Assembly: GCA_048772705.1 (NCBI GenBank)
Contig: JBLWGC010000104.1
Location: forward strand, 1,205,394-1,269,393
Source of the DNA: Leidyana gryllorum EB-2025a
Taxonomy: Eukaryota; Protista; Apicomplexa
Length of the DNA stretch: 64,000 nt
Reading direction: 5' to 3'
Position numbers and translations under genes: made by a program. Positions 36,801 through 63,500 of this stretch are shown here, in pieces (position 1 is the first letter of the stretch; each line of letters starts with the position of its first letter). Below the pieces are notes generated by a model. It did no database searches and had not been told where the DNA came from. It saw nothing but the letters and a program-made list of their open reading frames with translations.

Positions 36801-38087
36801 CCGATACTTTGAGATCAGTAGGACAGAATGCGTTCTTGACGCCCACAGAGGGTACTTTCAGCGTAGCCCTCGAAATGTGGGTGAGGACTCGGGGCGTCAC
36901 AATTTCGGCTTCTTCCAGCAAAGGCGTCCCACACGCCCATCCATATTTGATTGCACGAGCGGCGATGGCTGTCCAGGCCGTCTCCCAAGCGTTGCTGGCA
37001 CACACCGGATAGTTCTGCCACCACTTCCATAAGCGACCGCTCTTCATCAACTTGTAACAAGCCTCATTATCAGTGAACATATACATCAGACGAGGCGCCA
37101 GATGCATCCGAGCGGATGAAACGTCAATCACAAAAGGTGTCAGTTCGGTTATGACGTGTTCGTCCAACTTCTCCAATGTCCAAAAGTAGCGGGCCTGCGA
37201 CACCGCCTGACTCAAAGCACGATGCCACTCCTTGATATTCGAGCATGCTGCCAGGAACATCAACGATCTTTAAAGGCTCGGTGACCAAGTACGACATACC
37301 TGTTGACACTGGTCGCCGATAACTACTCCGCAGTTTAACCATAAACGCTTCATAGAACCATTTAGGGTCCAAGAAATCGTCACAACAGTCCCGCAACAGC
37401 TGACGACGTTCCTCGAATCCGGTCATCCAAGGTCGGGCCTCCAACTTCCATCGTAACAACTCAAGCCATCCCGCCAGTTGTCCGACTATTTTACTCGAGA
37501 TATTCAGCGGCAAACATCGCCCGTCCTCTTGCGGCGTTGTCAACTGCACATTGTGTGTCGGACAGCAGAAGAAGAAGGCGCGCGTATGCACAAAGGAGAC
37601 ACATACACACACAACACAATACGACAGGCCACCCAACACTCGACCCCATCATCAATTGAGTGTAAAGCACCACGGCGTGGGAGAGACACACGTTTGAAGA
37701 GCGTTCCACCGTGCAACAGCGGACGGTCGCTGGTACAGCACGCAGCAAAGTTACGTCACGCCATAAAGCACCGAAGAGGGCTACGCCACTTACGGCTTTC
37801 CAGAGGTGGCGGAGGACAGTCTGGTAGAAGGAGAGGTCTATCTCCTTGGTGTCGGTGGCCCAACACGCATTTGTCTTCTCGTGAATGTGGCGGTAGCGGC
37901 TTGATAGACTTTCCCAGCGCGAGATACCTGCTGTGGTTCTGACTGTGTCGCCTTCAAGCAGTCGCAGCAGCTCTGTTTTCACATCGGTAGCTTCCTTCTC
38001 ATGGGCTGCTGCAACGGCTCCAGGCAGAATTCGCTCAAAGTGACTGTCTTCCAGTAGTGAACGAAACCTCTTCAAATCACCTCTCAT
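30848..38087 (-). CDS. PSME4: Proteasome activator PA200/Blm10 (HEAT/ARM solenoid)
   Basis: Very long multi-exon helical protein with the PA200-type C-terminal region (FWLPQII..LQDFFKWHQKEW..FTAEQREIL..PIYFS); MDPAEPAKS and YAEIRKRAQ resemble conserved PA200 segments. Confidence 0.82.
35551..35592. repeat. Compound (GA)n(GT)n microsatellite in a PA200 intron
   Basis: gagagagag..gagagagagagagagtgtgtgtgtgtgtg read directly. Confidence 0.8.
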
Positions 38088-45100: not shown

Positions 45101-46590
45101 TACTGACTGGACCAATACAGTGGCTGCATGGGGCGCTGTCGCTTTCCTGGCGACCCTCTCTTTGACACTGCAAGGGACCCTAATTCGCGCTTTCGCCAAT
45201 AGTATTGGTGTCTTGGTCGGCACAGCTTGCGCTTATGTATGTCTCTTGGTGCCGTCAGAGTACTACATGTTCCATGTTCTCTTTGTCGCCCTCTCTGGTG
45301 CTATATGGGTGTGGTTTGCTGCCGATCCCTATATTTCGTGGGCAATTCTCAATCCTTCACTGCGAACGACGGCCGTTGTGGCGATGATCCAAGAGGTAAC
45401 AATTGTTACCGAGGGGTTCTACGGATTTCGAGATCGAAACACACTGTGCCTTTATTGGGGTGTCTCGAGTATGGTGGCTGTGTGTTTGGCTGTTCTCATC
45501 AGTCTCTTGGTGGTGCCCAGTCGTGCGAATCGGTGCATTCGACAAAACATCGCTGATGCCTTGTTCAGCGCTTCAGAGTCATTTGCCGCCTGCGTGGAGA
45601 TCTCGTTTAGTGACGGAAGTGACAATCTGGAGAGCCGACACCACGCATTGTTATTCCGCCAGGACTGGGAGAAGTATCACGAATTCCAAAGATTCAATGG
45701 TAAATATCATCTGAGATCCTATGAGATCATCCAAGATGACGCTTTCATGGAAGTCCAGTCTCTCTGTTCACTATTCTCGCCAGAGCCAAACATGCAGATA
45801 GTCGCCAGAGGAGCTAACCGTCTCACAGAATACGCGGCTTTGTGCAAAGCTCAATTGAATGAGGTCCGTCGCTGGGCCACCAGAGATGCTCGTCCCCCTG
45901 ATCTTCACGAGATTGACCTTGAACGAAAATATAAGGATATCCTAATAGAAGTTACCGAGAGATTCATCAATACTCATGCATTGATTCAGGTGAACCACTT
46001 TCCCTTTGTGCCTTCGACTGACACCACACCGCACGTTCTTGAGCCCCTCACCCGATCTCCTGTCTTTTTCTTCTTCACAGTCTCTCACATTGCAGACGGC
46101 GGTGGACCAGGCCGGTCGGTGGCGTTGGTGGTGGCAGAAGAGCAGTATAACTGCTCTCACTCGCCAGCAATTCCTCGCCACTCTGGAGAGGCATTGCCGA
46201 TCAAGTGCGAAGCGTTTGATTCAACTGGGGGAACTGCTGGGACGTGCAGCCGTCGAGGGCGAGGAACGACTCAAAAATCACACAAATGTGCAGAGTCGCG
46301 CCTTCGCAGCTGCTGCCGCGGCAGCTGAAGGTGACGGAGTCTTGAGTTCGTCTCAGTCCGGCACTCCTGGGACCCCCTCGCCATTGTTCATGTCGGAGCC
46401 CGCGCCAGTAATTGCCCCCTTTCGAGATCGCAGAGCTGTTATGTGGGCCTATGCTTTACTGCATCTCGCTGACCTGAACTATATCGGAGCCTATGTGGCC
46501 CTGTTGTTTCCGGACGGTGAGATGACTCCCACGCAAATCAGCCCGGAGACAGTCGGAGGCGGCTCGGGACCTTCAAGCTCGCCTGTCTGA
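42118..46590 (+). CDS. Multi-pass membrane protein, FUSC/ALMT (aromatic acid exporter) superfamily-like
   Basis: Two hydrophobic clusters separated by a long soluble region; AWGAVAFLATLSLTLQGTLIRAFANSIGVLVGT and ISLLVVPSRA resemble FUSC_2-type motifs; multi-exon. Confidence 0.65.
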
Positions 46591-46708: not shown

Positions 46709-48670
46709 CTATCGAGTTTCAGTGTCGCGGGCTCCACAATCGCACTCCTCCTCTAGTTGTGTTGAGACACTCCTGTCGAGTGGGAGATCTGACTCCAAGT
46801 CGATGTCGCAAACGCTTTTGGAGCGGCAGATGCTCTCCTCCATTTTGTCACTGAACTCGTCATCAGCGGAAGCTAACGGAGGGCACCAAAACCTCAGAAG
46901 GTCCACAGTCGGAATGAGAGCTAAAGCCGGCTGGCAGAGACGGGTAAGTTCCGCATGATGACTTTCAAAATCATCGGTGTCTCCTAAGCTTCTCAACGTA
47001 TCTATTCCACCACGCATTGCATCAGTGGTCGCTCTACCACAGTGCTGGTTGATTAATTCTGCAGCACTGCTATCTTCCATCATCCTCTCGATCCATTCGC
47101 AGTACCCCATCGCAAGATCTCTCGCTTTTACACTGTGTGCGGGCCGCCAACGGATTTGCTTCTCTCTGAGCGCGTCAAGTGTTGCCATTGAACTCGGCTC
47201 ATCGCCCAAAGTGATGGGGGCTTTGTAGGGGTTAGAATCAATTTGGAAAGAGAGAATCCCAGAATCGGTGAGGTTCAGAAGATGGATATGCGCCTGATAT
47301 CGACGCTGCGTCGTCCACAAAGCCCGATTTCTACGACAAGACCAATAATCGCCTTCCGTAAGCACTGGGCGGGTGCTATGATAGTCACAATAAATGGTGT
47401 GCGGCGCACACTCTATTGCGCAGGGGAGGGGAGTATTTCGTTTGACAACGACAGTGTTAGTTCCACTGTTATCACTCAGGAGTATTGGGAATCGAGTGTA
47501 AGGCGCGTCTTGCATAGAACGGATGAACGCAGCTTGCAGTGCAGCACCCCGAACGACATAGTGATCGACCCGTTTTACCAACAATGGCCGCTTCCCCTCC
47601 GTGAGGTACTTCACCAATGAGGCTTCCACTTCGTCGTAATTGACAGCCCCGCCCATAAGTAAAAGCTCATCAACTGTCGTCCTACTCTGCCCGCTTTGGC
47701 TGAAAAGGGTCGTGAGAGAAGCCACGCAGCGTTGCAGGATGTCAGCGTTGAGGTGACGCCAGAAATGGCGCGTGATGTCGATATTGTAACTTCTGTCCTT
47801 CAGATCGATACTTTCGGTGATGCGGTCCTCAGTCAGAAGCTTCAGTTTGATTTGTTCGGAACGCCACCGGAGTGCTGCCATCGATGTTGGGTCCGCGGAG
47901 AGGTCAATGCCGTGCAATCGCTCAAAATCTTTCACACAATAGTTAACCAGAGCTGCTTCCATCAAGTGCCCTCCCAGGGCGCTGTCATTCACAGTTGCAT
48001 TCACCATAAAGTGGTCTCCCTCATCAAAGCGTAGAAGCGATGTCTCCAAAGTGCTCCCCAGATCAAAAGCGAGAATATGGTACCCCTCCTCTTCGGAGCG
48101 CTCGACTCTCTCGTTGGCTGCTGCAAACGCCATACCGACAGCTATTCGTTCACAGATGACTTGTCGAACGCGAAGCCCAGCGATATGGCCGGATACTTCG
48201 ATACTTTTGATTTGTTCAGCCGTAAAGTTGGAAGGAGCCGTGACCACTGCTTCGGACACCCGGTGGCTGAGGTGACGCTCAGCAGCCCCCTTCAGCTTCC
48301 CAAAGATGATAGCCACTATCTCCTCGGGCCTGTAGAACTCAACATTACTCCCAGTTCCGACTTGCAGCAGTGATGTATTATCCGCACCGCGGCACAGATC
48401 AACGGATTTCATCGTCTTGTGATCCGGGTGGCCAATGAGCTCGTCATATTTGTAGCCGAGTAGGTGTCTGACATTGTAGACTGTGTTCGGTCCACTGGAA
48501 GCCATCATAGCCTCCGCCGCCCTTCCAACTATCGGACCCGTCTCTGTGAAGCAAACCACATTAGGTAATCTCAACTCTCCATCGACTGGGATTACTGTCA
48601 CCACACCCTCATTACATACCGCCACCGATGAGTATTTGGTGCCGAGATCTATTCCAACGATAGGATTCAT
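46709..48670 (-). CDS. Divergent Hsp70-like protein, array copy 1 (retains lid-like helices)
   Basis: GIDLGTKYS, PEEIVA, AVVTAPSNF, IAGLRVRQVICE, AFDLG, LGG, KRNTPLP; intronless. Confidence 0.88.
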   Translation of the reverse strand: MNPIVGIDLGTKYSSVAVCNEGVVTVIPVDGELRLPNVVCFTETGPIVGRAAEAMMASSGPNTVYNVRHLLGYKYDELIGHPDHKTMKSVDLCRGADNTSLLQVGTGSNVEFYRPEEIVAIIFGKLKGAAERHLSHRVSEAVVTAPSNFTAEQIKSIEVSGHIAGLRVRQVICERIAVGMAFAAANERVERSEEEGYHILAFDLGSTLETSLLRFDEGDHFMVNATVNDSALGGHLMEAALVNYCVKDFERLHGIDLSADPTSMAALRWRSEQIKLKLLTEDRITESIDLKDRSYNIDITRHFWRHLNADILQRCVASLTTLFSQSGQSRTTVDELLLMGGAVNYDEVEASLVKYLTEGKRPLLVKRVDHYVVRGAALQAAFIRSMQDAPYTRFPILLSDNSGTNTVVVKRNTPLPCAIECAPHTIYCDYHSTRPVLTEGDYWSCRRNRALWTTQRRYQAHIHLLNLTDSGILSFQIDSNPYKAPITLGDEPSSMATLDALREKQIRWRPAHSVKARDLAMGYCEWIERMMEDSSAAELINQHCGRATTDAMRGGIDTLRSLGDTDDFESHHAELTRLCQPALALIPTVDLLRFWCPPLASADDEFSDKMEESICRSKSVCDIDLESDLPLDRSVSTQLEEECDCGARDTETR

Positions 48671-48820
48671 CGACGGGAACACAAGTGCGACAGAAAGCGG
48701 CAGTGTTTTTTACCCACCAAATGGCAGCGAAGTCGAAGAATGTCGACTTTTATGTGGCACCGCGGATTCTCATTGCTTCTTGTGATGGGTTCACACACTT
48801 TTCGGGAGATTAATGATCGC

Positions 48821-50473
48821 TCACTGTTCGTAAAAGCTTCTTTCATCGCTCAAATGCTGCAGTATACATTCGCGATGCAAAGCACCACACCCATTGCATC
48901 TCGTATCTCGCCTCGCACTGACGTTCCCCAGCAGATTCCTGTATCTGTCTTTGGGAACATCCGCACATTCTATCTGCAGCTGCCTGAGTTGACTGGCCCA
49001 TGGGCTGCAAACAGTGGCACCGGGTACAGTGCAACCAGTTGGGACCTCCAAAAGCCCATTTTCGTCGATTTGAATGCCCAACTCGATATTAATGCCCTCC
49101 GCAGGGAAGTTCTCAAAGTTGATAACGAGCAGTGGCTTGTTGCTTCCGCTTCTGCCTCTGTCAACCAATGCTTCCACAAACTTGACTTCCCAATCCAATT
49201 CGCACATCTCGTACGCCGAAATAGTCACCGTGGTCGAGAAGGGTAAAGGACTATTGCGGGGAATCACTATCTCCAGCCCTCCGAAAGATAACTCCCATCC
49301 GAAGGGCTGTAATGTGTGGGGTACTCCTTCCAAGTCCCCCAGAATTCGACCCAGAATTGCCGCACCGTACACCACAGATCTGGCAGCATCGAGGGAGTCA
49401 CACACTCCGACCCCGTCAACTCCGAAGTTCTCCATGAGGGTTTCACGTACGTCCAGGATTCGACCCCCACCACCGAGAACAAACACTCCGTCAAGGTCTT
49501 CGGCGTCCAGACCGCCCGATTCGAGGACTTCTGTGATCACTTTGGCGCATTGGCTGAGGCATTTCTGGTTCAACTCGTGAAAAGAGTCGAGTGAGATATC
49601 CACTCCGAGCCGAATGTGGCCGGCCTCGTAGCGAATTGAGGCTGTTTGCGATGTGGACAATTCTGCTTTGGCCTTTTCACACAAAGGGTGAAGCAATAAA
49701 CGCGCTCGGTCAAGCCCAAACGACTCAGTTGTGTCATCATTTTCCAGCTGTGTTAGACAGTGAGTGACCAGAGACTCTGTCAGAACGTCGCCGAAATCCA
49801 CTGCGTGACTGCTGCTGGTTGGATGACGCAGGAAGTCTGTGGGAGACTTGCGGAGAAGCCAACCCTTTAGCTGGATGCCGAAATCCAGAAACAATGCAAA
49901 TTGGCTGGGTTCATTTGGCTTCAAGTACTTGAGATAAGAGTATCCACACGCGTCGGGCTCCGGGATGACTCTGCGCACAGCGAGTCCCGCTATACTGCCA
50001 CCCGCGATAATGGCTCGGACTCCGGCCGGGAGGAAGTCCAGTGGAGTTGTGACCACTGCCTCGGAAACGGGGCATCCCAAATGATCTTCAGCGGCTCTTT
50101 TGATTGTCCCCAGCAACAGCGCGACGAGTTCCCCAGGACGAAAGCACTGTAATTTGCCTTTCCACTTCAGAGTAAAGAGGGGTGTATTGTCGGAACCTTG
50201 GACGAGTTTGATTGGTTGTCGAGTTGCGTCCCGCCATTTGATCGCGTCGTTATAATTGCGCCCAATGAGACCTCTGACATCACGAATAGTGGCTTCGGGA
50301 GGGGCATCTCGCGCAGCGGTTCCCACGAGAACGCCTTTATCGGAGAAGGCGATAGTGTTGAGCAACTTCTCCTCTCCCTCGATAGGGATGATCTCCGGCT
50401 TGTCTCCCGCGAGGAATGCTGCTGTCGAGTATCGGGTTCCAAAGTCGATGCCAATGATGGGATGGGGGGACAT
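48821..50473 (-). CDS. Divergent Hsp70-like protein, array copy 2
   Basis: GIDFGTRYS, AVVTTP, IAGLAVRRVIPEP, CEKAKAELS, VLGGGG, IPRNSPLP. Confidence 0.88.
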   Translation of the reverse strand: MSPHPIIGIDFGTRYSTAAFLAGDKPEIIPIEGEEKLLNTIAFSDKGVLVGTAARDAPPEATIRDVRGLIGRNYNDAIKWRDATRQPIKLVQGSDNTPLFTLKWKGKLQCFRPGELVALLLGTIKRAAEDHLGCPVSEAVVTTPLDFLPAGVRAIIAGGSIAGLAVRRVIPEPDACGYSYLKYLKPNEPSQFALFLDFGIQLKGWLLRKSPTDFLRHPTSSSHAVDFGDVLTESLVTHCLTQLENDDTTESFGLDRARLLLHPLCEKAKAELSTSQTASIRYEAGHIRLGVDISLDSFHELNQKCLSQCAKVITEVLESGGLDAEDLDGVFVLGGGGRILDVRETLMENFGVDGVGVCDSLDAARSVVYGAAILGRILGDLEGVPHTLQPFGWELSFGGLEIVIPRNSPLPFSTTVTISAYEMCELDWEVKFVEALVDRGRSGSNKPLLVINFENFPAEGINIELGIQIDENGLLEVPTGCTVPGATVCSPWASQLRQLQIECADVPKDRYRNLLGNVSARRDTRCNGCGALHRECILQHLSDERSFYEQ

Positions 50474-50541
50474 TCGGGCTGCAGGCTAACGGTCGTCTTG
50501 GGTTGTGACTATCTGACTTGCTAAAGACTTTGATCTGTTGT

Positions 50542-52224
50542 TTAGATGGGGCTCGTGTCCTGAGGGCGTCGATCATAATGCGCCGCCTCATCGGCCACTT
50601 GCTCCACTATACATCGCCGACTCTGTTTCACACATCCTCCACACCGCTTCACGCATCCAGATGTTATCACTTCACTCTCAGTGTCACTCTTCAGTTTTGA
50701 ATGAGATTGATGCAGAAGTTTCAGCTTCTCTGGTGAGAGCCGATTGTTGCGTGTGTAGAAAGACACCGTTTTGGGCGTATTGGTCGCCGCACACCGCCAG
50801 GAGACAGTCGCAAGCCCGTTGATGTCGATGGCGAAGGTACAATCAATTTCTGTCTCCGCCGTTGGTGAAGGCGACAGACCGTCAATTTTCGCTACACCGA
50901 TCTCATCATTCCTCTTCAAGTCCACATAGGTCCCCTCATAGATCGTCTCCAGCAGTTCCGTCTCCTCGGGTCGCGCTGTCGCCAGTCTCATCTCAACTGA
51001 AGTCGGTAGAGCCGTGTTACGGGCGATCAGCGCGTAAAACTGCCCATTATAGGCATCGCCAAAGGGTACCACAGTATGGAGCACTCCGCCCAGCCCCCGC
51101 AAGGCCTCGCCTTGGAGGGCGGCGCCATGAACCACTGTTCTCCCCACTTCAATCAAATCGTGGATCTTTCGACCGAAATCTTTGACGATGCGGTTTCGAA
51201 GGCCTTCCATCTGACTGCCACCACCGAATAGAAAAACGTTCGACAAATTATCGGCAGTCAAAGAAGCCTCCGCCAACGCACTCCGTAATGTTTCCAAACA
51301 GCTGTCAAAGCAGTCGGAGCTCAGCTCATTGAGTAGTTCGCGAGATATATTGAATGTACATCTAAGATTGAGAATGTTACAGTCAATCTTGGTGCACTCC
51401 GAATGGGATAATTCTTCTTTGACCTGCTCACAGCGCAATTCAAGCCAACGATACAGTTTTTCATTGTCAGTCAAATCGACTTTGTGGTCACATTTGAGGT
51501 CGGTGAGGCAGTGTTTCACCAACGCAGTCGTCGTAGTCTTACCAACATTGATAGTGTTTGCACTTGTGGTGTGCACAAGAAAGTCTTTACCGGATATGTG
51601 AAACAGCCACACTTTCAATGACTCTCCGACATCGCAGAAGAGCGCGTTTTGGAAATCGTATTCCTTCAAACCATACTTGTGAGCATACGCGAGTCCGCAC
51701 GCCTCCCGCTCGGATATGATTTCACGTATATTGAGGCCGGCGATTCTGTCAGCAGCTTTTATCGCTTCTAGTCCAGCAGAGTGGAACGCCAAAGGAGTTG
51801 TAATTACCGCCTCCAAAACTTGACAACTCAGATACTTCTCGGCAGCCTCTCTGATGTTAGCAAACAAGAACGCGAGCACCTCTTCTGGGTGGAAAGTACG
51901 CAGTTCTCCAAAGCATCTCATCTCAACCAACACATCGTCACCAAAGCCTTTGAGGAGTGATATCGGCTGTCGACTTTCGTCACGCCACCTCACGGCATCA
52001 TCATAGCGGAGCCCAATTAATCCTCTGATGTCATGGATAGTGCTTTCAGGCGGCGCCAGTATCGCTTCAGCTCCAACCACAATCCCTTTGTCCGTAAAGG
52101 CGACGACATTCTGCAGCTTTTCCGCCCCGTGAATCGGAATCAGCTCCACGGAGTCTCCTCTAATTACCGCTGCCGACAACGAATGACTGCCAAAGTCAAT
52201 GCCAATGATGTACGTTTGAGACAT
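50542..52224 (-). CDS. Divergent Hsp70-like protein, array copy 3
   Basis: GIDFG, PEEVLA, AVITTP, CEQVKEELS, IARNTALPT, IYEG, FAIDING. Confidence 0.88.
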   Translation of the reverse strand: MSQTYIIGIDFGSHSLSAAVIRGDSVELIPIHGAEKLQNVVAFTDKGIVVGAEAILAPPESTIHDIRGLIGLRYDDAVRWRDESRQPISLLKGFGDDVLVEMRCFGELRTFHPEEVLAFLFANIREAAEKYLSCQVLEAVITTPLAFHSAGLEAIKAADRIAGLNIREIISEREACGLAYAHKYGLKEYDFQNALFCDVGESLKVWLFHISGKDFLVHTTSANTINVGKTTTTALVKHCLTDLKCDHKVDLTDNEKLYRWLELRCEQVKEELSHSECTKIDCNILNLRCTFNISRELLNELSSDCFDSCLETLRSALAEASLTADNLSNVFLFGGGSQMEGLRNRIVKDFGRKIHDLIEVGRTVVHGAALQGEALRGLGGVLHTVVPFGDAYNGQFYALIARNTALPTSVEMRLATARPEETELLETIYEGTYVDLKRNDEIGVAKIDGLSPSPTAETEIDCTFAIDINGLATVSWRCAATNTPKTVSFYTRNNRLSPEKLKLLHQSHSKLKSDTESEVITSGCVKRCGGCVKQSRRCIVEQVADEAAHYDRRPQDTSPI

Positions 52225-52356
52225 TCGGCTATTATTCTCTACTCCACCCTCCTCTCTGCCGTGTAAAATATTCGAATTCCAATCTCTCCAGCTACTCCAG
52301 AGACCCACCCAAGTCTTCTCAGCTCAACCAAAACTTTGCAATGTTCATCGGTCTTG

Positions 52357-54273
52357 TCAGATCCCATCCCCCACCACAGTCGCGCCCTCTCCGGCTTTTA
52401 GGCACTCAGTGCAGCTCGGGTCAGCGGTCGACACATCAGTGACGAACAGCGGGTAATGTTGTGTCTCCTCCCGCAATTGTTGGACAATGGATTCTCGCCC
52501 CGAGACATCACACTGTTTGTCACCGCTCTCTTCTTCAGACTGTTTTTCACCGCTCTCTTCTTCACACTGTGTGTCACCGCTCTCTTCTTCACACTGTTTG
52601 TCACCGCTTTCTTCTTCACACTGTTTGTCACCGCTTTCTTCTTCACACTGTTTGTCACCGCTCCCTTCTTCAACTCCTTTTCTCTCGTTACTCCCTCCTT
52701 CACCCTCAGTTTGCTTCGTTCCTAGTGTCTCTTCCAAAAGGCTCAGATGTTTTTGTTTGAGGCCATCCAGTTGTATGGGTAAAAGACGACTCGTCCGCAC
52801 ACTGAACGATGAGGAGGCCGATTTATCGGCGGGCTCACACACAGCAGACACAGTCGCCTCGCCCGTCAGTGCCACTTTGATGGTGATGGAGACCTTAACA
52901 TCGCGCGCGGGTGCTGGCGGCAAACCAGTAATGCTCGAAGTGTTCAACTGTCTGTTCGACGTTGCCACGATGTTGTCGCCTTCATAGCAAGACAGATCCA
53001 TGGTCCTTTGATTGTCGGATCCTGTTGTGAGGCAGCGTGTCACAAAAGTGGGCAGTCGGGTATATCGCGGGATATAGATATTCATTGTGTCGCCAGCGGA
53101 ACGCCATCCAATTGGGAACAGAATGTAAGGCTCCCCTTGCAGACAGTGGAGGTAGGCAGCGCGAATAGCGGCACCAAAAACAACGGCTTCTCGTTCTTCC
53201 AGCAGAGTGATCGACTTCCCATTGGCACTCTTTTCAATACGGTCTCGTAAGCCTTCGGTCCGGCATCCACCACCGAGCAGAAAGATTTTCTTCACGTCAC
53301 TCTTCGGGATTGTGGTATCCTCCAGTGTACTTCTTACAGCGGCGACACAGCTGTTGAATTGGTCGGATTGCAGATCGTTGAACGAGTGGGGCGACACTGT
53401 GAAAGGGTATTTGGAATCGATAATCTCAACATCGAATCTGATACAATCCGATGTCGTCTGTTCTCTTAAGGCTTTCTCACAACGCGAATGCACTCTACGA
53501 TAGATCTCATCGCTCTCAGTCAGATCGATTTTGTGGTCATTCTTCAGTTCCTCAATACAGTGTTTGGCCAAAGAGTCGGTCGCATCGGCACTTTTTATTT
53601 CCTCTCCGGTTGGGTGGACGAGAAAGTCTCCATTGCGCTTCCTCACGCGCCACAGTTTCGCGGAGACTCCAATATCGAGGAAGAGTGCGTCCTCAGCGAC
53701 GAGTGCGGGTGACAGGTGTCTGCAATACGCAGTTCCACACGCGTCGCGCTCATTGATTACGCCACGGACACTGAGCCCCGCGATTTGGCCGGCGAACTCA
53801 ACCGCGCGGATTCCATCAAAGTGGAAATCCAACGGAACAGTGATCACCGCCTCAGATATTTCGCACTCCAAATGCGATTCTGCCGCCTTTCGGATGGCGC
53901 CGAAAATGAGTGCGAGTATTTCTTCCGGACGGAAGCTGTGGGATTCCCCTCTATATCTCATTTCGATTTGAGCGTCGTCCTCTAATCCTCGGACGAGCTT
54001 CAGCGTCTGCCGCGTCTTCGCCCGCCATTCGACTGCCGCATCGTATTTGAGTCCAATCAGTCCTCTGATATCACATACAGTGTTTTGGGGCGGCGCTTCG
54101 GTGGCGGCCCTCCCGACGGCAACACCACTCTCCGTGAAGGCGACGGCATTCCGAAGCCTCTTTTCGCCCAGAATTGGGATTACTTCGGGCTTTCCCTCGC
54201 GCCAGATAGCCGCTGAGGAATATCGGGTGCCAAAGTCGATGCCGATTATGCGTTGTTCAACAGCGTGAACCAT
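52357..54273 (-). CDS. Divergent Hsp70-like protein, array copy 4
   Basis: GIDFGTRYS, AVITVP, IAGLSVRGVINE, LLGGG, TTGSDNQ, YEGD, ITGLPPAPA. Confidence 0.88.
   Translation of the reverse strand: MVHAVEQRIIGIDFGTRYSSAAIWREGKPEVIPILGEKRLRNAVAFTESGVAVGRAATEAPPQNTVCDIRGLIGLKYDAAVEWRAKTRQTLKLVRGLEDDAQIEMRYRGESHSFRPEEILALIFGAIRKAAESHLECEISEAVITVPLDFHFDGIRAVEFAGQIAGLSVRGVINERDACGTAYCRHLSPALVAEDALFLDIGVSAKLWRVRKRNGDFLVHPTGEEIKSADATDSLAKHCIEELKNDHKIDLTESDEIYRRVHSRCEKALREQTTSDCIRFDVEIIDSKYPFTVSPHSFNDLQSDQFNSCVAAVRSTLEDTTIPKSDVKKIFLLGGGCRTEGLRDRIEKSANGKSITLLEEREAVVFGAAIRAAYLHCLQGEPYILFPIGWRSAGDTMNIYIPRYTRLPTFVTRCLTTGSDNQRTMDLSCYEGDNIVATSNRQLNTSSITGLPPAPARDVKVSITIKVALTGEATVSAVCEPADKSASSSFSVRTSRLLPIQLDGLKQKHLSLLEETLGTKQTEGEGGSNERKGVEEGSGDKQCEEESGDKQCEEESGDKQCEEESGDTQCEEESGEKQSEEESGDKQCDVSGRESIVQQLREETQHYPLFVTDVSTADPSCTECLKAGEGATVVGDGI
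52508..52671 (-). repeat. 27-bp coding minisatellite, ~6 units (EEESGDKQC)
   Basis: tcacactgtttgtcaccgctctcttct repeated with substitutions. Confidence 0.9.
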
Positions 54274-54735
54274 TCTCACCGGACTTCCAGTACTCGCCGC
54301 CAATTGCCTCCGGTCGACAGTTGGACAGATAAATTTCAGGGGTGTCCAATTCTAAGATTCAGCACACAGCGACTCTCTCAACACTCTCTCCGTCTTACAG
54401 TAATAGTTTGGACCGACACCGGAAGATCCTCCAGTGGGACCGATGTGGAACAGCGTACTCATTTCAGTCTGTCCCGACCGCAGACAATGTGTCATTGTGA
54501 CTTATCCGTCCGATGCATCGGTCTCGACTCAGTGAGTTTTTCGCAGTACGATGGTGTGAGAGATAGTTGTGGTGGATGGGTGGGCAATCTGTGTGTCGTG
54601 GAGACGACAGCAACACGGCTTCTCTCCAAGATATTGGTGCCCATCACCATCGAGCCTCATTCATCAACCGCTGCTCAGCTTCACCCTCGCGGCTCGATGC
54701 AGTCGACGAGGAGTCTAGCTGGAAGGGCATCAATT

Positions 54736-56477
54736 TTAGATCAATCGGCGTAACTTGCGTCGGGTTGTCGACACGTCATTTGTGGATCGTCGATAAGATT
54801 GTGTCTCGTCCTCCAGCTGTTGGCGTACGCGATCTCGCCAGGAAACGTTACCATCTTCGCCACCGCTGTCCCCTTCGAATCCGGATCCTCGGCTCTTCTC
54901 AGTCCCCGCTTTGTCCTCAGCTCTGCCCTCCACTTCCGTCTCTTCCAAAAGGCTCAAATGTTTCTGTTTGAGGCCATTCAGTTGTATGGGTAAAACTCGA
55001 CTCGTCCGCACACTGAACGATGAGGAGGCCGAACTATCGCCCGGCTCAAACACAGCAGACACAGTCGCTTCTCCCATCAGCCCCACTTTGAGAGTGGTGG
55101 GGACCGTAACATCGCCCGCGGGTGCTGGCGGGAATCCGACAATCTCCAACAGGGTGAGCTGTGATTGGACTTCACCAAAATGTTGTCGCCTTCAGGAGAA
55201 CTGAATACCCATTCCCGTTTGGTTCTCGTCTGCTGTACATAGAGTTTGCGTGAACACAGTGGGCAGTGCTGTGTATCGCCGGACGTATATATCCAGTATT
55301 CCATCCACGTCTCGGCGTCCGATCGGAAACAGTGTGTGAGGCTTCCCTTGCAGACTGTGGAGGTCGGCAGCGCGAATAGCGGCACCAACAACAACGGCTT
55401 CTCGTTCTTCCAGCAGAGTGATGGACTTCCCATTGGCACTCTTTTCAATACGGTCTCGTAAGCCTTCGGTCCGGCATCCACCACCGAGCAGAAAGATTTT
55501 CTTCACGTCACTCCTCGGTATTGCGGTATCCTCCAGTGTAGTTCTCACAGCCGCGACACAGCTGTTGAATTGGTCGGGTTGTAGTTCCTTCGCCACTGCC
55601 AAAGAGTACTTGGAATCGATAATCTCAACATCGAATCTGATGCAATCCGATGTCGTCTGTTCTCTGAGGGCTTTCTCACAACGCGAATGCACTCTACGAT
55701 AGATCTCATCGCTCTCTATCAGATCGATGTTGTGGTCATTCTTCAGTTCCTCAATACAGTGTTTGGCCAAAGAATCGGTCGCATCGGCACTTTTTATTTC
55801 CTCTCCGGTTGGGTGGACGAGAAAGTCTCCATTGCGCTTTCTCACGCGCCACAGTTTCGCGGAGACTCCAATATCGAGAAAAAGTGCGTCCTCAGCGACG
55901 AGTGCGGGTGACAGGTGTCTGCAATACGCAGTTCCACACGCGTCGCGCTCATTGATTACCCCACGAACACTGAGCCCCGCGATTTGGCCGGCGAGCTCAA
56001 TCGCGCGGATTCCACCAAAGTGGAAATCCAACGGAACAGTGATCACCGCCTCAAATGATTTCGCACTCCAAATGCGATTCTGCCGCCTTTCGGATGGCGC
56101 CGAAAATGAGTGCGAGTATTTCTTCCGGACGGAAGCTGTGGGATTCCCCTCTATATCTCATTTCGATTTGAGCGTCGTTTCTCAATCCTCTGACAAGATT
56201 CAGCGTCTGGCGAGTTTGATTTCGCCATTCGACTGCCGCATCGTATTTGAGTCCAATCAGTCCCCTAATATCACACACAGTGTTTTGAGGCGGTGCTTCG
56301 GTGGCGGCAGCTCCAATGACGACTCCCGACGGCAACACCACTCTCCGTGAAGGCGACGGCATTCCGAAGCCTCTTTTCGCCCAGAATTGGGATTACTTCG
56401 GGCTTTCCCTCGCGCCAGATAGCCGCTGAGGAATATCGGGTGCCAAAGTCGATACCAATTATGCGGTTTTCGGACAT
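54736..56477 (-). pseudogene. Frameshifted Hsp70-like copy 5 (close paralog of copy 4)
   Basis: Hsp70 sequence is split over ORFs 56271-56570, 56051-56362, 55192-56046 and 54736-55149. Indels relative to copy 4 at ~56325 (+13), ~56052 (+1), ~55195 (+1) and ~55165 (-1). Confidence 0.8.
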
Positions 56478-56827
56478 CGCAGTCCACTTCTCTATGCTCA
56501 GGCAGATTGTTCCGCTTCCGAGGTGAGATCTGAGCGAGTGACCACGCAGAAGAATCAAATCACAGCTCACATCAATTGTAACGAGTTGACTTTGTCAGTA
56601 TTCGTTTGAAGTCGAGTACAGCGGTATATCGGCATTCAGTGATGTTTGCTTCGATGGGGCGAACGGAAGATCGGGCGCATTCCGACAGATTCAGCCAAAA
56701 TTTGCACAAAATCAAGTTGCTCCATTATTGATCTACAGACTGTCCAAATTGACGCCCAGCGGATCTCAATGGGCCACAGCAGACAGGAATGTGGGGGGAT
56801 GGCTCAAAAGTCATCTTGTGGGAACAC

Positions 56828-58474
56828 TCAAACAGCCTTTGAGTGGCCCACAGGCAGTGACAGATGGTGGCGAGTCTCATCCAGCAATTGCTGTCTAATG
56901 TGGTGGGAGCTCAACTTTTCGCGGTCCCCGACTTCCCTCATGGCTCTGCTCTCTGGTTGAAGTAACAGTCGGTGTCTCTCTGCGAGGACTCCCAATCGAG
57001 CAGGTGCCGACAGAGAGCTGTGAATGCAGAAGCTGAGAGTGCTCACAAATTCCCTCCAGTTATTCACGAGGGAGAAAGACCCACTTCCGTCGACGCCGAT
57101 GTGCACCGAAACGTCGTTTTTCTCTCTGTTGCGACCACCAGAGGCCGATGGATGTTGTACAGCGAGAGAAGCATTTTGAATAGCGTCCACCCAGGGGCCT
57201 TCTGACAAAAAGTAACACTCCTTGTCAGCACACCGTGTCCAAGTGGAAGTGTGAGAGATCGGTAGTGGTGTGTAGCGGGGGATCACAATGGAGGCTTCGT
57301 GCAACGAGCAGTCCAGTATTGGGAGCAAAGTATGAGGTTTTTGGTCGACATTGTGGAGAATGTTTCCCAATATGGCGGCCCCGAAAGCCACCGATCTTCT
57401 CGCATCTTCAGAATTACATACTTCCACTTGAAGCTCGAAGTTATCCACAATTGTTTCGTAAGGCTCTTCCATATGCGAGCCACCCCCGAGCAGAAACACT
57501 TTGTCAACGCCGGATGCTTCTCGTGTGACAATATTCACCGCCTCCAGATACTGTTGGCAGCGTTGGAAGTTGAGCGCAATCAAGTGATCGCAGCCGACCT
57601 CGAGCTGACAGGTGGACGCGATGATCTCCACATCAAATTGAGCGCGATTCGACGTTGTCAGTTCCTGAATGGCCTTCTCGCATTGCGAATGGAGTCTGCG
57701 ATAAACCCCATCGTTCACAGTCAGATCGATCCCGACTTCATTCTTGAGCCTCTCAAGGCAGTAGCTGATCAACGAATCTGTGAGGTCGCAGTCCACAAGA
57801 CGGGCTACTTGAGTGTCAGTGTTAAAGATGAGAAAGTCGTTGCGTTCCTTTCGCATATGCCACAGTTTCAGCGAGGTTCCCATATCAACGAAGAGTACGT
57901 CTTCAAGGGTGTCAGATGGCTGCAGGTGTTTACAGAGAGCGAATCCACACGCGTCGCGCTCTGCGATGACTTCACACACACTGAGACCCGCGATTCGGCC
58001 GGCGAACTCAATTGCGCGGATTCCATCAGAGTGGAAATCTAACGGAACGGTGATGACCGCCTCAGATACTTCGCACTGCAGATGGAATTCTGCGGCTTTT
58101 CGAATGACGCCAAAAATGAAGGCGAGTATCTCCTCCGGACGGAAGATTTGCAATTCTTCGCCACATGACATTTTGATATAAACATTGTGTGCCATTCCTC
58201 GGACGAGATCCAGCGGCTGCCGCGTCTTCGCCCGCCATTCGACCGCCGCATCGTATTTGAGTCCAATCAGTCCCCTGATATCACACACAGTGTTCTGGGG
58301 AGGTGCGTTGGTGGCAGCGCTTCCCACAGCGATACCGCTCTCAGTGAACGCCACGGCATTCCGAAGCCTCTCTTGGCCCAGGATTGGGATCGCCTCAAGT
58401 TTCCCTCCTCGGCAGATAGCCGCCGAGGAATATCGGGTCCCGAAATCGATACCGATTATGCGATTCTGAGTCAT
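56828..58474 (-). CDS. Divergent Hsp70-like protein, array copy 6
   Basis: GIDFGTRYS, PEEILA, AVITVP, CEKA, LLGGGS, IPRYTPLP. Confidence 0.88.
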   Translation of the reverse strand: MTQNRIIGIDFGTRYSSAAICRGGKLEAIPILGQERLRNAVAFTESGIAVGSAATNAPPQNTVCDIRGLIGLKYDAAVEWRAKTRQPLDLVRGMAHNVYIKMSCGEELQIFRPEEILAFIFGVIRKAAEFHLQCEVSEAVITVPLDFHSDGIRAIEFAGRIAGLSVCEVIAERDACGFALCKHLQPSDTLEDVLFVDMGTSLKLWHMRKERNDFLIFNTDTQVARLVDCDLTDSLISYCLERLKNEVGIDLTVNDGVYRRLHSQCEKAIQELTTSNRAQFDVEIIASTCQLEVGCDHLIALNFQRCQQYLEAVNIVTREASGVDKVFLLGGGSHMEEPYETIVDNFELQVEVCNSEDARRSVAFGAAILGNILHNVDQKPHTLLPILDCSLHEASIVIPRYTPLPISHTSTWTRCADKECYFLSEGPWVDAIQNASLAVQHPSASGGRNREKNDVSVHIGVDGSGSFSLVNNWREFVSTLSFCIHSSLSAPARLGVLAERHRLLLQPESRAMREVGDREKLSSHHIRQQLLDETRHHLSLPVGHSKAV

Positions 58475-58841
58475 TGCAGTCCACTTATCTATGCTCAGGC
58501 AGATCCTTCCGCTGCCGAGCTCGGATCTGAGTTAATAATCTCAAAAGTCAGCTGCACATAATTTTCGGCTCACATGGATTATCACAAATTGGCCTCTCAG
58601 CGTTCGATTCGGGGTAAAGTGAAGTTGAGTAGAGCGATGTATTGACCTTCAGTGATATCCATGCCCAACTCGCCGAACGACAGATCGATCGCGTTCCGAT
58701 GGAATCCGCCAAAATTTTGACACATTCAAGTCGGCCGCAACGGAACTACACTCCCGTCCGATAAGAAAAAGTTGACCGATAATCGATCGTTCACAACAGA
58801 AAAAGACGAGGACGCGCGACAATGGGATGCATAGGAAAATG

Positions 58842-59664
58842 TTATCCCCAACGAGAGCTCGAATTCTCCCATCGATGAGATCGGACGCCGCCCACCGCGC
58901 ATGAAAGTGTCGACCCCGCGCCAGACGGAGCGTCGTGCATCAAAACAGCTTTCGGCAATGAGGATGCGGGCTGAGCAGTTTCGAGGGAGAATGGTCCATT
59001 CTCATTGACGCAATATTGCAATAGTAGAGGATTCCTCAAGGTGCTGTTGATGGAGGGCACTGTGAGCCATCAAAAGCCAACGATCTCTCCGCGTCCTCAG
59101 CAGCAAAGAAGTCCGTCTCGAAGTGCTGAAGGCACCTCGGATCGTCTTTTGAAGTTCTCCCCCTGTGACAATGACCGACTGGCAGAATCACGTGGGAGGC
59201 CAGCGAATTCAAATGCTCCGATTCCATCAAAGTGGAAAGCAAAACAGCGGCACCACCGTATGAGACACATTGCACTTCGAATGGATTACAGGCGCCTCCC
59301 CGAATGGCTCCCATTGAGAAGGCGAGCAGCTCTCCGGAAGTACCGATTACACTTAGAGTCAACTTGAGTGTTCACATCCGAATGTCGGACGCGATTTAGC
59401 CGCTGCGGCGTCTCCTCCCGCCATACGATTGCCGCATCATATTCGCGTCCCCGGGTTCACACACAGTGGTTCGAGGAAGGTTCCGATTGCGGAGGTTCCA
59501 CAGTGACAACCGTCTGTGCAGAGGCAACGGCATTCAGAATTTTCTGCGGGATGAGAGTTGGAACGCCGCCCCCCCGTTTCGCTCTTTCGCACACAGGCGC
59601 CGAGGGTTATCGAGTGCCGAGCGGTTACGGACGTCGGAGACACGTTGTGTGAAGAATCGCTCAA
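58842..59664 (-). pseudogene. Heavily decayed 5' fragment of an Hsp70-like copy (copy 7); limits approximate
   Basis: Remnants LGTR*, KILNAVA, EYDAAIVWREET and FHFDGIGAFEFAG match copies 4-6 but are interrupted by stops and frameshifts. Confidence 0.7.
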
Positions 59665-59869
59665 GAGTGGGTGAGGAGACGTCGGGGAGGAAGTGATGGG
59701 GTAATCCGCTGGCTTTGGTATTGAAGGCAGAAATGTTCCGTCTACTGTAACATTTTGCCATCAATCTGGAGGGACTGTTAAGCAAGTTGGATCACCAATT
59801 TGGCTCATTGTATACGTCCACGGTGCACGTGTTGACCACACAACGAGATCATTGTAGCAGTGAGTGGTA

Positions 59870-61576
59870 TCAACCGCAGCCACAGTGGTCGTAATGTCGA
59901 GTTTCGTCCAGTACCTGTTTTGCGATACAACGGCGACTCGGGCGCTCACACCCTTCGCATTCTCCCACCTCTTCACAAACCTTGCGTCCGCCTTGTAGTA
60001 TCTCAGCACTTGCAACTTTCAGCCTCCCAGCCATTTTTGGAGACATCAAACTGCTACGGGTGTAGAAGGGCACGGACATTGTTGTATTTGTAGAAAGACA
60101 GCGCGCTGAGAGACTTCCAATTCCATCTGTCTCCACCCTAAATGTGAACTCGGCTTCCTTCATCTCAGGACATTTCGACAGGAAGTCTGCCAGCGGAAAT
60201 ACGGCTAACACTTGGTTCCGATCTCTTTGAACAAAATAGCCCTCCATCACCCCAACGCCCTCCATTGCCAGGGAATCCAGATCGGACCATCTCCACGTAC
60301 GAACAGCCGGCAGTTCTGACAGTTCATAGAGGACAGGCATAAAACAAGTTCTGGAATGGTACAGTCCGAGAGGAACCACAATGGGAGGACTGTTATCGAG
60401 GCGACTTGGTTGCCTGGCTCGGACAAGGGCACCATATACGATATCGATGTATGGATCTATCGAGTCATAAATCTCGACAGTGTGACCGTTGAAAAACTCG
60501 TGGATGCGATCTCGCAGCAGCCAAGATCCGCCACCAATTATAGCAACCCTCTGCACCTGATGTTTCGCAATATTAGCGTCCCTCAGTACGACCTCGATGA
60601 CTTTCATACATATGTCGAAGCTCTTCTGATTCAGATCATTGAACTTATCGCGTGACGCCTCAACGTAAGACTCGAGGTTGGACAGATCTGACTCGAGGTT
60701 GGACAGATCTGACTTCAGTGTCACTCGCTTCAGTGTGACACGCTCCGATTCTCTGGACTCCTCAATTGCAGATTCACACTGTAATTTGAGAGCCCAATAC
60801 AAAGAATCCCTCGCGGTAAACTCGTCCGCGCTCCCGTCTCCGAGGCACAACCTCACCAATGTATCGGTCAAGAGACTACCAAAATCAACAACGTTGTTTT
60901 TGGTTGCGTAAGCGAGGCAGGGAAGTCTTCCTTGTTTTTTAAGGAGCCAAAGCTTCAGAGAGACTCCGCAATCACACACCAACATCGTATCCCCTCGAAG
61001 TGTCTCTCCATCTTGGGCATGGACGTTTCTCATCGACGCTAATCGGCAGGCCTCCCGCTCCGAGATCACTTCCAGGACAGTCAGACCCGCAATTTGGCCA
61101 GCGAGCTCGATAGCTCGGACTCCGCCTGAATGAAAATTCAACGGAGCCGTCACCACCGCCGCAGATACCTCACACATCTGATACTCCTCTGCCGCCTTTT
61201 TGATAGTTCCGAATATCAAAGCGAGTACCTCCTCGGGACGAAATCGACGGATCTCTCCACGCCACTTCACTTCGATAAGAAACGTGTCCGCCGCGGCGCG
61301 GACCAGAGAGATTGGCTGCCGAGTACGCGCGCGCAATTTGACTGCCTCGTCATACGTGAGGCCAATGAAACTTCGGATATCATGAACGGCAATGTCGGAA
61401 GGGGCATTCCGAGCAGCGGCTCCGACTACGACACCTTCGTCCGTAAAGGCGACGACATTCAGCAGCTTCTCTGCCCCCAAAATTGGGATAGTATTGTCTG
61501 ATTCGGGACTTCTGCCTATCGCTGCTCTCGAATAGCGGCTCCCAAAGTCAATGCCAATGACGCGATTTTCAGACAT
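59870..61576 (-). CDS. Divergent Hsp70-like protein, array copy 8
   Basis: GIDFGSRYS, PEEVLA, AVVTAP, IAGLTVLEVISE, IIGGGS. Confidence 0.88.
   Translation of the reverse strand: MSENRVIGIDFGSRYSRAAIGRSPESDNTIPILGAEKLLNVVAFTDEGVVVGAAARNAPSDIAVHDIRSFIGLTYDEAVKLRARTRQPISLVRAAADTFLIEVKWRGEIRRFRPEEVLALIFGTIKKAAEEYQMCEVSAAVVTAPLNFHSGGVRAIELAGQIAGLTVLEVISEREACRLASMRNVHAQDGETLRGDTMLVCDCGVSLKLWLLKKQGRLPCLAYATKNNVVDFGSLLTDTLVRLCLGDGSADEFTARDSLYWALKLQCESAIEESRESERVTLKRVTLKSDLSNLESDLSNLESYVEASRDKFNDLNQKSFDICMKVIEVVLRDANIAKHQVQRVAIIGGGSWLLRDRIHEFFNGHTVEIYDSIDPYIDIVYGALVRARQPSRLDNSPPIVVPLGLYHSRTCFMPVLYELSELPAVRTWRWSDLDSLAMEGVGVMEGYFVQRDRNQVLAVFPLADFLSKCPEMKEAEFTFRVETDGIGSLSARCLSTNTTMSVPFYTRSSLMSPKMAGRLKVASAEILQGGRKVCEEVGECEGCERPSRRCIAKQVLDETRHYDHCGCG
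60669..60714 (-). repeat. Perfect 21-bp in-frame tandem duplication (SDLSNLE x2) in copy 8
   Basis: gactcgaggttggacagatct x2. Confidence 0.85.
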
Positions 61577-61796
61577 TCGAATTGTATCTCAGATTTGTAC
61601 CAATACATCTGTCTAACTCTTAGAAAAGCCTCGCCGCTCACGTGTTTATGCGCACTTACACACGGCATCTGTGTGTTAGCCCTCCTATCACTATCAGACT
61701 GGTGGCAGATCTCATCAGTCGTTCGAGAGACGTCTCTAAGACTGCGACTGTGTGACCGAACTATGAGTAAGGTGACAGGAGGGTTGTTGGAGAACT

Positions 61797-63500
61797 TTAA
61801 GCAGCAACAGACAGATCAGTGATTGCGTGTGCATAGTACTCAGCCTCATCTGTGACTTGCTGAATGGTACAACGGAGGCTCGGCGACTCGCACCCTCCGC
61901 ATTTCTCGTCTGCCGTCTCTTCCTCGATCGCATCGGGGACGAGGCTCGCGGATGTCTGCTCGAGGCCGCGGATTATGTCCGGTGAGAGGACACTGCTCCG
62001 CGTATAGAAAGAGATCGATTTTGACACATCAGCCGAAAGGCACTTCGCCCGAATTGAACACCGGCCGTAGATATCGATATTTATGGTGAACTCCACTCCA
62101 GTCTCACCAGCAGGAGCTGCGGGTAAATCCTTGAGCTCCAGCTTGCAAATCTGAGTGTTGGCAATCAATTGAGCACAATCCCCTTCGTAATATAGTGAAA
62201 GCATCGAAGTTTGATTGGAGTCCCCTGTTCTCCGAACCACTCTACGGAAAGCCGGCAGACGAGTGTTCCGAGGAAAGAGAACCCAAAAATATTGACCTGC
62301 CAGGCTCCGCGCATCGGTCCCGAATGGCAGGACAGTGTGAGGGTCTCCGTGCAGTGAGTGAAGTATCTTCGCTTGGGAAGCGGCACCATAGACGACTGAT
62401 TCTTGCGCTTCTCCTGAGTCCCAAATATCCACATTGGCCCCTTCGAAGGCGGCTTTCAGCAACAGTTTGATTAGTCTCATACGAGAGCCGCCACCGAGCA
62501 GTATCACTCTTTTCACCCCGGCCTTTGAGACCGAGGCCCTTTCCAAGACATTGAGAACCGCTTGGACGCACTTCGTGGCAAACTTCCGGCAGAGATCATC
62601 GTACTCTTCAGCCGTAATACCGACCTGACATCTAATTTCACGGACCTCAAAGTGAACCTGCGTGCGGTCTGACGTGGTCAACGCCTCTTTCGCACTCTCG
62701 CAGTGCAATCGAAGGGAGCGGTACAGCTCAGCGGCCGAGGTGACTTGAGACTTCACTCGATCATTGAGATGCCTCAGACACTTATTCATGAGAGATTGGG
62801 TTATGGTCTCGCCGTCATCCATTGAGCCAGTGTGTGTTGCGTAGGTGAGGAAGTCCTCACCAGAACGGCGGAGAAACCACACTTTCAGTGAAACTCCAAC
62901 GTCGCAAAAGAGAACATTGGCGAGTCCCCTTTTCGGTAGATCGTTCAATAAGCGTTGAGAGTACGTGAGTCCACAGGCGTCACGCTCGGACAAAGTTTTG
63001 CGGATTGTCAGGCCCGCAATTTGGCCAGCGGCCTCTATGGCTCGAATACCATCTGTACGAAAGTTCAGGGGAACCGTCACCACCGCTTCAGATACTTTGC
63101 ACTTCAGATAGTCTCCGGCCGCTTTTTTGATGCACCGAAAGATCACAGCCAGTATTTCTTCTGGCCGGTAGTGTGTGACTTTGCCACAAGACTTCATTTC
63201 GATGTGAAAGTTGTCTTCGAAACCTCGGATGAGCTCAAATTCCTGCCGAGTCGCCTCGTGCCACTGCATCGCCTCATCATATTTGAGACCAATAAAACCT
63301 CGGATATCACACACGGTGTTTTCAGGAGGTGCTTTGAGGGCATCGACTCCAACAACGACACCTTCGTCGGTGAAAGCCACGATATTCAGAAGTTTATCGG
63401 CGCCCAATATCGGGATCACTTCGGGTTTCTCCCTTCTGAGAATCGCTGCGGAAGAATAACGGAGGCCGAAATCGATACCAATGATTCGATTCTCTGTCAT
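61797..63500 (-). CDS. Divergent Hsp70-like protein, array copy 9
   Basis: GIDFG, PEEILA, AVVTVP, CESAKEAL, LLGGGSRM, PRNTRLP, TGDSNQTS, YEGD, LPAAPAG. Confidence 0.88.
   Translation of the reverse strand: MTENRIIGIDFGLRYSSAAILRREKPEVIPILGADKLLNIVAFTDEGVVVGVDALKAPPENTVCDIRGFIGLKYDEAMQWHEATRQEFELIRGFEDNFHIEMKSCGKVTHYRPEEILAVIFRCIKKAAGDYLKCKVSEAVVTVPLNFRTDGIRAIEAAGQIAGLTIRKTLSERDACGLTYSQRLLNDLPKRGLANVLFCDVGVSLKVWFLRRSGEDFLTYATHTGSMDDGETITQSLMNKCLRHLNDRVKSQVTSAAELYRSLRLHCESAKEALTTSDRTQVHFEVREIRCQVGITAEEYDDLCRKFATKCVQAVLNVLERASVSKAGVKRVILLGGGSRMRLIKLLLKAAFEGANVDIWDSGEAQESVVYGAASQAKILHSLHGDPHTVLPFGTDARSLAGQYFWVLFPRNTRLPAFRRVVRRTGDSNQTSMLSLYYEGDCAQLIANTQICKLELKDLPAAPAGETGVEFTINIDIYGRCSIRAKCLSADVSKSISFYTRSSVLSPDIIRGLEQTSASLVPDAIEEETADEKCGGCESPSLRCTIQQVTDEAEYYAHAITDLSVAA

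Follow-up and report, generated by a model that had tools for sequence, protein, structure and literature searches.

A tandem array of divergent, probably uncoupled Hsp70 relatives in Leidyana gryllorum

What might a whole row of Hsp70 genes do when its products lack the hallmarks of a working chaperone? The question is raised by a locus of Leidyana gryllorum EB-2025a (Apicomplexa; assembly GCA_048772705.1, 15.5 Mb in 237 contigs). The window analysed here, 64,000 nucleotides of contig JBLWGC010000104.1 (positions 1,205,394 to 1,269,393), carries at its positions 46709-63500, on the minus strand, seven open and intronless Hsp70-family frames of 548-657 amino acids. Their matches to PF00012 score 125-256 bits (cut-off 20.6; E 1e-36 to 1e-75); pairwise identity is 24-49% among the frames and 24-28% with canonical Hsp70. 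Intergenic gaps shrink to 68-138 nucleotides. An earlier reading of this DNA, referred to below as the original prediction, counted nine copies, seven open and two broken, and proposed a non-foldase role. The seven open copies stand, but copy 5 is a frameshifted, near-complete gene and copy 7 merely a relic of about 140 codons. Judged by K71 and the phosphate-2 loop, the interdomain linker, the lid and the C-terminal EEVD, the array proteins are members of the Hsp70 superfamily and not canonical foldases. The genome encodes a full canonical set elsewhere, namely two cytosolic Hsp70s, BiP, a mitochondrial Hsp70, Hsp110 and a Grp170-like gene, so the array need not provide a folding function.

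Origin and selection

The copies almost certainly descend from the lineage's own intronless cytosolic Hsp70, because a private deletion and the tree both place them there. The deletion removes two residues from a hairpin in subdomain IIB of the nucleotide-binding domain (NBD). It is common to the array copies, with extra indels nearby in copies 5 and 8, and was found in two of the 123 canonical sequences measured, which are both of the organism's own cytosolic Hsp70s; Gregarina, Protomagalhaensia and the organism's own BiP and Hsp110 lack it. The IQ-TREE phylogeny covered canonical and gregarine Hsp70s, with no Ssz1 sequence and no HSPA12 or HSPA13 references. It places the array clade inside gregarine cytosolic Hsp70 (98/99), next to the organism's own genes (91/97, an unstarred node). 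The canonical cytosolic Hsp70 itself groups with Gregarina and Protomagalhaensia, and its best match, among ordinary single-domain matches, comes from Gregarina niphandrodes (76%). Copy 5 was compared with X or N at its breaks, and about ten misframed codons of its β-sandwich substrate-binding domain (SBD-β) entered the tree and early pair counts; the results from six open copies are unaffected, and the counts for copies 4 and 5 below use the corrected frame.

Within the tree, copies 2-9 form one clade (100/100). Copy 1 joins two unlinked genes with weaker support (84/86), at a point where long branches meet, and all ten sequences unite in a single clade (100/100), recognizable by the loss of one residue from the phosphate-2 loop and by a shorter linker. 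The long-branch clade that had been anticipated is recovered, but the array on its own is not strictly monophyletic. The two unlinked members, C169:78988-80523 and C160:57674-58996, carry both the phosphate-loop and the linker deletions; they have Gln or Leu in place of K71 and Asp or Arg in place of E175.

Membership of an existing atypical subfamily (Ssz1/HSPA14, Hsp110, HSPA12/13), or capture of a viral Hsp70h, is barely credible as the source of the array. The high structural rank of Ssz1, described below, fits such membership, and the top ESM Atlas feature match, level with bacterial clusters at 0.96, is a cluster of viral Hsp70h. Against both stand the private indel and the tree, which link the copies to the organism's own cytosolic Hsp70, although for HSPA12/13 the indel argument is indirect. 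When the array profile was compared with 351 sequences, the organism's own Hsp70a came first (396 bits); against the PDB, Hsc70 leads, and Ssz1 and Hsp110 lie outside the top 60 matches. Ssz1 ancestry, which some motifs had suggested, was rejected on the indel, this profile ranking and the tree, the last built without an Ssz1 sequence. Descent from Hsp110/Grp170 was rejected in the same way, as the organism's own Hsp110 reaches 101 bits and is without the private deletion. For a closterovirus Hsp70h origin, the indel and the tree give a host origin instead, and the scanned neighbours of the array are cellular in look or without a Pfam match.

Searches beyond this genome found no orthologue. 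Copy 9 and the profile, used as queries of a word index, returned canonical Hsp70s alone (26-32% identity), an exhaustive HMMER search over 1.84 billion representatives gave a best single-domain score of about 345 bits, below the organism's own canonical gene, and a metagenome scan gave matches of 22-30%, except for one 52-residue stretch at 40%. The exact array sequences were not in the searched sequence collection, and we found no publication on such an Hsp70 family in gregarines in a literature of incomplete coverage.

With similarly high confidence we regard the array copies as real genes under purifying selection. Codon models of the six open main-clade copies gave a ratio of non-synonymous to synonymous substitution rates (dN/dS, omega) of 0.27 in the NBD (twice the log-likelihood difference, 2dL, 330 against omega = 1) and of about 0.15-0.2 in SBD-β, where dS is saturated. 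Across subdomains omega is 0.15-0.32, with neutrality rejected in each; between the two canonical genes it is about 0.15. Pairwise dS among the copies is 1-3. Under simulated neutral drift at 0.3 substitutions per site, none of 200 open reading frames (ORFs) was still open. The NBD value below 1 agrees with the original prediction of selection and not decay. That the copies are dying duplicates without function is very improbable and, for their long-term history, already refuted: two of the nine copies are broken, as is a further Hsp70 copy on another contig, but the omega of 0.27, the frames kept open despite near-saturated dS and a conserved splice-like element upstream speak against decay. 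The further broken copy lies in a cluster at C230:1579055-1586640, where the two canonical cytosolic Hsp70s are interleaved with this freshly broken gene and with a half-degenerate one that is 53% identical, has K71 and GGGT present and has a truncated lid. The cluster shows the opening stages of that birth-and-death process caught in progress.

Both dN and dS climb from lobe I of the NBD through lobe II to SBD-β (dN 1.1 in lobe I against 2.4 in lobe II; dS 5.0 against 8.6), and this parallel rise points to 5'-biased gene conversion within the array. Birth-and-death evolution, as first proposed, is therefore supported with gene conversion added. Between copies 4 and 5, 51 of 365 NBD codons differ (27 synonymous, 24 non-synonymous), compared with 50 of 65 codons in the groove (15 synonymous, 35 non-synonymous; Fisher p 0.026), and the groove of this pair either escaped homogenization or was swapped in. 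Such a pattern would also suit decoys or sensors in a conflict with viruses, hyperparasites or host factors that target Hsp70, in which the groove would be the variable recognition surface. We consider this improbable. The birth-and-death history, the groove spared from conversion with its non-synonymous excess, and the many other independently degenerate Hsp70s of the genome are in its favour, but M1a/M2a comparisons of the six open clade copies found no positive selection (p 0.36 in the NBD, 1.0 in SBD-β; low power, saturated), a signal peptide is absent and no antagonist is known. The effector role listed in the original prediction is likewise unsupported because there is no signal peptide.

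Linker and nucleotide pocket

The copies are very probably uncoupled from the chaperone cycle. In all eight copies that span the region, the interdomain linker carries an 8-residue deletion of the same size (31 to 23 residues), and copy 1 shares it along with the phosphate-loop deletion. The DLLLLD linker had been described as substituted by PHT[LV][LF]P; it is deleted instead, and the PHTxxP stretch is the start of SBD-β. The relay and J-protein contact positions Y149, R155 and R171 are lost in all copies, and K159 and P176 mostly so. Beyond helix A, the lid is absent from copies 2-9. EEVD, KDEL and a hydrophobic leader are absent from every open copy, as the original prediction had it, and the loss of coupling between NBD and SBD that it foresaw is upheld by the deleted linker and the replaced relay residues.

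The nucleotide pocket presents a less uniform picture. K71, which together with D10, E175, D199 and D206 serves metal and water coordination at the diphosphate (PMC9438496), is Arg in all seven open copies, as predicted. All copies lack one residue of the phosphate-2 loop, and G202 and G203 are gone, but the claimed loss of T204 is doubtful: with the residues numbered backwards from the strand that follows, six of seven copies have Ser or Thr at position 204. Position 13 likewise is Thr or Ser in six of seven. The change of NEPTAAA to ER[DE]AC is seen in five of seven copies, while copy 2 keeps the EP of NEP and copy 1 reads ERIAV. D10, G12, E175, D199, G201, E268, G338 and G339 are invariant throughout the open copies. 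Five of the 54 acidic NBD positions are invariant and three of these five are the phosphate-pocket acids (p ~4e-4, confounded by burial), so the ATPase site has apparently not been erased. A shared loss of ATPase motifs was thus an overstatement, given the invariant D10, E175, D199 and E268 and the mostly hydroxyl-bearing positions 13 and 204. As for the premise that K71, the 199-204 loop and the linker are needed for hydrolysis, K71R is a conservative change, and the title of PDB entry 1ATR describes T204 as non-essential to the hydrolysis reaction of Hsc70. We found no published test of K71R. Read from the sequences, the pattern is better stated as a phosphate site that seems remodelled but conserved, with a loss of coupling and not of ATPase motifs; hydrolytic death is likely.

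Part of this remodelling concerns charge. D206 is replaced by Lys or Glu in the array, and the main clade has basic residues at positions 14, 71 and 206. An engineered D206K Hsc70 reportedly places the lysine amine at a potassium site, holds nucleotide and keeps less than 5% activity. PDB entry 1BA0, which we take to be this mutant, scores 275.7 against the array profile, compared with 273.1 for the wild-type Hsc70 NBD.

It is quite improbable that the copies are active but divergent ATPases or chaperones, serving stress dosage as proposed for nematode expansions. The retained D10, E175 and D199, the conservative K71R, the dispensable T204 (PDB 1ATR, by its title) and the precedent of expanded divergent Hsp70s (PMC6872716) are compatible with activity; the deleted linker, the lost lid, the replaced relay residues, the missing G202 and G203 and the exchange of D206 for Lys are not. 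A somewhat unlikely, though serious, alternative is that the proteins are ligand-free structural scaffolds, in which salt bridges between the basic residues 14, 71 and 206 and D10, E175 and D199 plug the pocket and lobe I offers the functional surface. Lobe I holds about 20 of the 33 derived positions that are invariant, the adenosine pocket is eroded and dN is lowest in lobe I (1.1 against 2.4). However, dS is lowest there too (5.0 against 8.6), so gene conversion accounts for part of the conservation, and the copies retain G12 and G201, glycines of the phosphate loops, as well as hydroxyls at positions 13 and 204. Whether the pocket still holds a ligand is, in our estimation, an evenly balanced matter.

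Predicted structure and comparison with Ssz1

An AlphaFold2 model of copy 9 from a 116-row alignment (mean predicted local distance difference test, pLDDT, 88.7; predicted template modelling score, pTM, 0.85) comprises the NBD, SBD-β, helix A, a disordered stretch and one tail helix; from the single sequence, pLDDT was 38.6. In the predicted model the folds of both NBD and SBD-β are shown to be intact. Structural comparison matched it to Hsp70 NBDs with Z-scores of 43-44, and the Ssz1 chains 6SR6 and 5MB9 rank second and third (44.0 and 43.8) despite lower identity. Over the full length in Foldseek, Ssz1 gives the lowest root-mean-square deviation (8.1-8.7 Å), followed by one integrative DnaK model at 9.2 and the rest at 11.7-24 Å.

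Ssz1/HSPA14 is the atypical Hsp70 of the ribosome-associated complex. Ssz1 binds ATP without hydrolysing it, has an abnormal linker and no lid, and binds peptide weakly via SBD-β (PMC7083937); SSZ is nearly always single-copy in fungi (PMC3879978). As judged from sequence and model, the array shares with Ssz1/HSPA14 an NBD with a complete SBD-β, the missing helical lid, an abnormal linker and the absence of a canonical cycle, and its domain arrangement in the copy 9 model is the closest we found. Unlike Ssz1, the array arose independently from cytosolic Hsp70 and has 8-10 paralogues; its linker is deleted, whereas that of Ssz1 is detached, and its Cys-bearing tail is new. The array is best read as working like Ssz1 in anatomy, convergently and without descent from it.

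Other relatives are less similar. With the organism's own canonical cytosolic Hsp70, the presumed direct ancestor, the copies share the IIB deletion, the lack of introns and D10, E175, D199 and E268, but they are without the linker, lid, EEVD, GGGT loop and relay residues, at 24-28% identity, with omega 0.27 against about 0.15 and about twice the cysteines. Hsp110 and Grp170 are likewise atypical relatives, with weak ATPase activity and a changed phosphate-2 loop. These proteins are larger and their SBD is extended; Hsp110 and Grp170-like genes occur elsewhere in this genome, and identity to the array is 13-20%. In Halicephalobus mephisto and Diploscapter, expanded divergent Hsp70s are heat-induced, with a best within-family match of 86% at the nucleotide level (PMC6872716). 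These lineage-specific, long-branch expansions alongside canonical genes resemble the array, but are far less diverged, and the part of that report cited here does not describe them as lacking linker, lid or catalytic motifs.

We therefore propose, at even confidence, that the array encodes a set of cytosolic, non-cycling, Ssz1-like Hsp70 scaffolds or holdases with paralogue-specific grooves. The organism's own intronless cytosolic Hsp70 duplicated to found a lineage-specific atypical family, which then spread in tandem with gene conversion and occasional copy death. The products would work in the manner of yeast Ssz1, a protein with a scaffold and hand-over function. NBD and SBD-β would be fixed against each other, and J-proteins could not drive them. 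With the phosphate and Mg end of the pocket kept (D10, E175, D199, Ser/Thr at 13 and 204) and basic residues gained at 14, 71 and 206, the NBD probably holds, and is stabilized by, Mg-nucleotide or a phosphate ligand without productive cycling. The lidless SBD-β groove, which differs strongly between paralogues, may bind particular partners at low affinity; to a partner-specific groove as such we give a little less than even weight.

Several points count against this proposal. The adenosine-side contacts K271, R272, R342 and D366 are eroded, along with G230/E231, and the invariant acids, whose conservation is also the highest of any positions across Hsp70s in general, might do no more than form pairs with the newly gained basic residues. 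Some copies (3 and 9) have polar residues in the groove pocket and may no longer bind peptide. The array proteins have no known partner, and the genome shows no expansion of J-domain genes (19 matches). The copy 9 model leans on a mostly canonical alignment, its structural Z-scores are tied within 1, and the deviation from Ssz1 is still large (7.7 Å).

Copies 2, 3, 8 and 9 end in a CxxC-x6-C tail followed by a helix with a terminal aromatic/His pair. Nothing matching this C-terminal module was found in the rest of the genome, and the Atlas gave no convincing match; that it binds metal is a guess. The open copies at 48821-63500 contain 15-20 cysteines each, compared with 7-8 in the canonical genes. 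An unlikely extension of the above would make the proteins a repeatedly evolved repertoire of variable receptors or adaptors, with a nucleotide-locked NBD (natural D206K/K71R), a conversion-shuffled lidless groove and a metal-binding tail, which recognize distinct pathogen or host ligands.

Gene copies, genomic setting and meaning

All nine copies lie on the minus strand. Copy 9 (61797..63500) is open, with 567 amino acids, and runs from the NBD through SBD-β and helix A to the CxxC-x6-C tail helix seen in the model. Copy 8 (59870..61576; open, 568 amino acids) has the same cysteine tail and a 21-nucleotide duplication in subdomain IIB (60669-60714). Copy 7 (59199..59621) is the decayed relic of an N-terminal region, its frame broken at several points (tblastn E 4e-8 to 1e-4). 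Copy 6 (56828..58474; open, 548 amino acids) has kept the tail helix and lost the tail cysteines. Copy 5 (54736..56477), a near full-length pseudogene whose nearest relative is copy 4, has indels at about 56322 (+13), 56057 (+1), 55590 (-12, in frame), 55196 (+1) and 55164 (-1); its TGA is a product of the frameshift. Copy 4 (52357..54273) is open over 638 amino acids from its ATG, and its tail contains an acidic, Cys-containing minisatellite of 27 nucleotides repeated 6.1 times (52508-52672). Copies 3 (50542..52224; 560 amino acids from ATG) and 2 (48821..50473; 550 amino acids) are open with the CxxC-x6-C tail. Copy 1 (46709..48670; open, 653 amino acids from ATG) has a longer, unrelated C-terminus and belongs, together with the two unlinked genes, to the sister subclade.

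Putative 5'-leader introns lie 52 nucleotides upstream of the ATG in copy 6 (58527..58573, minus strand; 47 nucleotides, GTGAG...CTCAG) and copy 5 (56530..56570, minus strand; 41 nucleotides). This splice-like element, common to both, hints weakly at transcription. The idea that these copies have a coding exon or a signal peptide further upstream was rejected, as an in-frame stop precedes the donor in copy 6.

Outside the array, at least about 15 further degenerate Hsp70 genes are found on contigs C2, C230, C169, C160, C92, C42, C182 and C104. At C92:189-3906 there are at least three very degenerate tandem Hsp70-fold genes, with an adjoining ORF that is F-box-like by eye. Directly downstream of the canonical Hsp70 cluster, L002:1-957 (minus strand) encodes a von Willebrand A/integrin-beta-like ORF that looks secreted by eye. 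Within the window, a multi-pass membrane ORF at 44103-46328 (plus strand), with a weak FUSC_2 match below cut-off (E 6e-4), is convergent with the end of the array. Exons with weak HEAT matches to PSME4 (PA200/Blm10 proteasome activator) lie at 35482-37263 (minus strand); the window also encodes an S1/P1 nuclease (2115-3476) and an AMP-binding enzyme (20388-22106).

Few proteins are as conserved as Hsp70, and the atypical members known so far (Ssz1, Hsp110, Grp170) are of ancient origin and occur almost as single copies. Here, a lidless and apparently uncoupled design has re-arisen recently from a traceable parent and then multiplied. The array thus provides a natural series for asking what the parts of Hsp70 are used for once the allosteric cycle is gone, in a clade with a natural Lys at D206 and with paralogues whose grooves differ between homogenized flanks. 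If these grooves bind distinct partners, an apicomplexan lineage would have put the Hsp70 fold to a new use.

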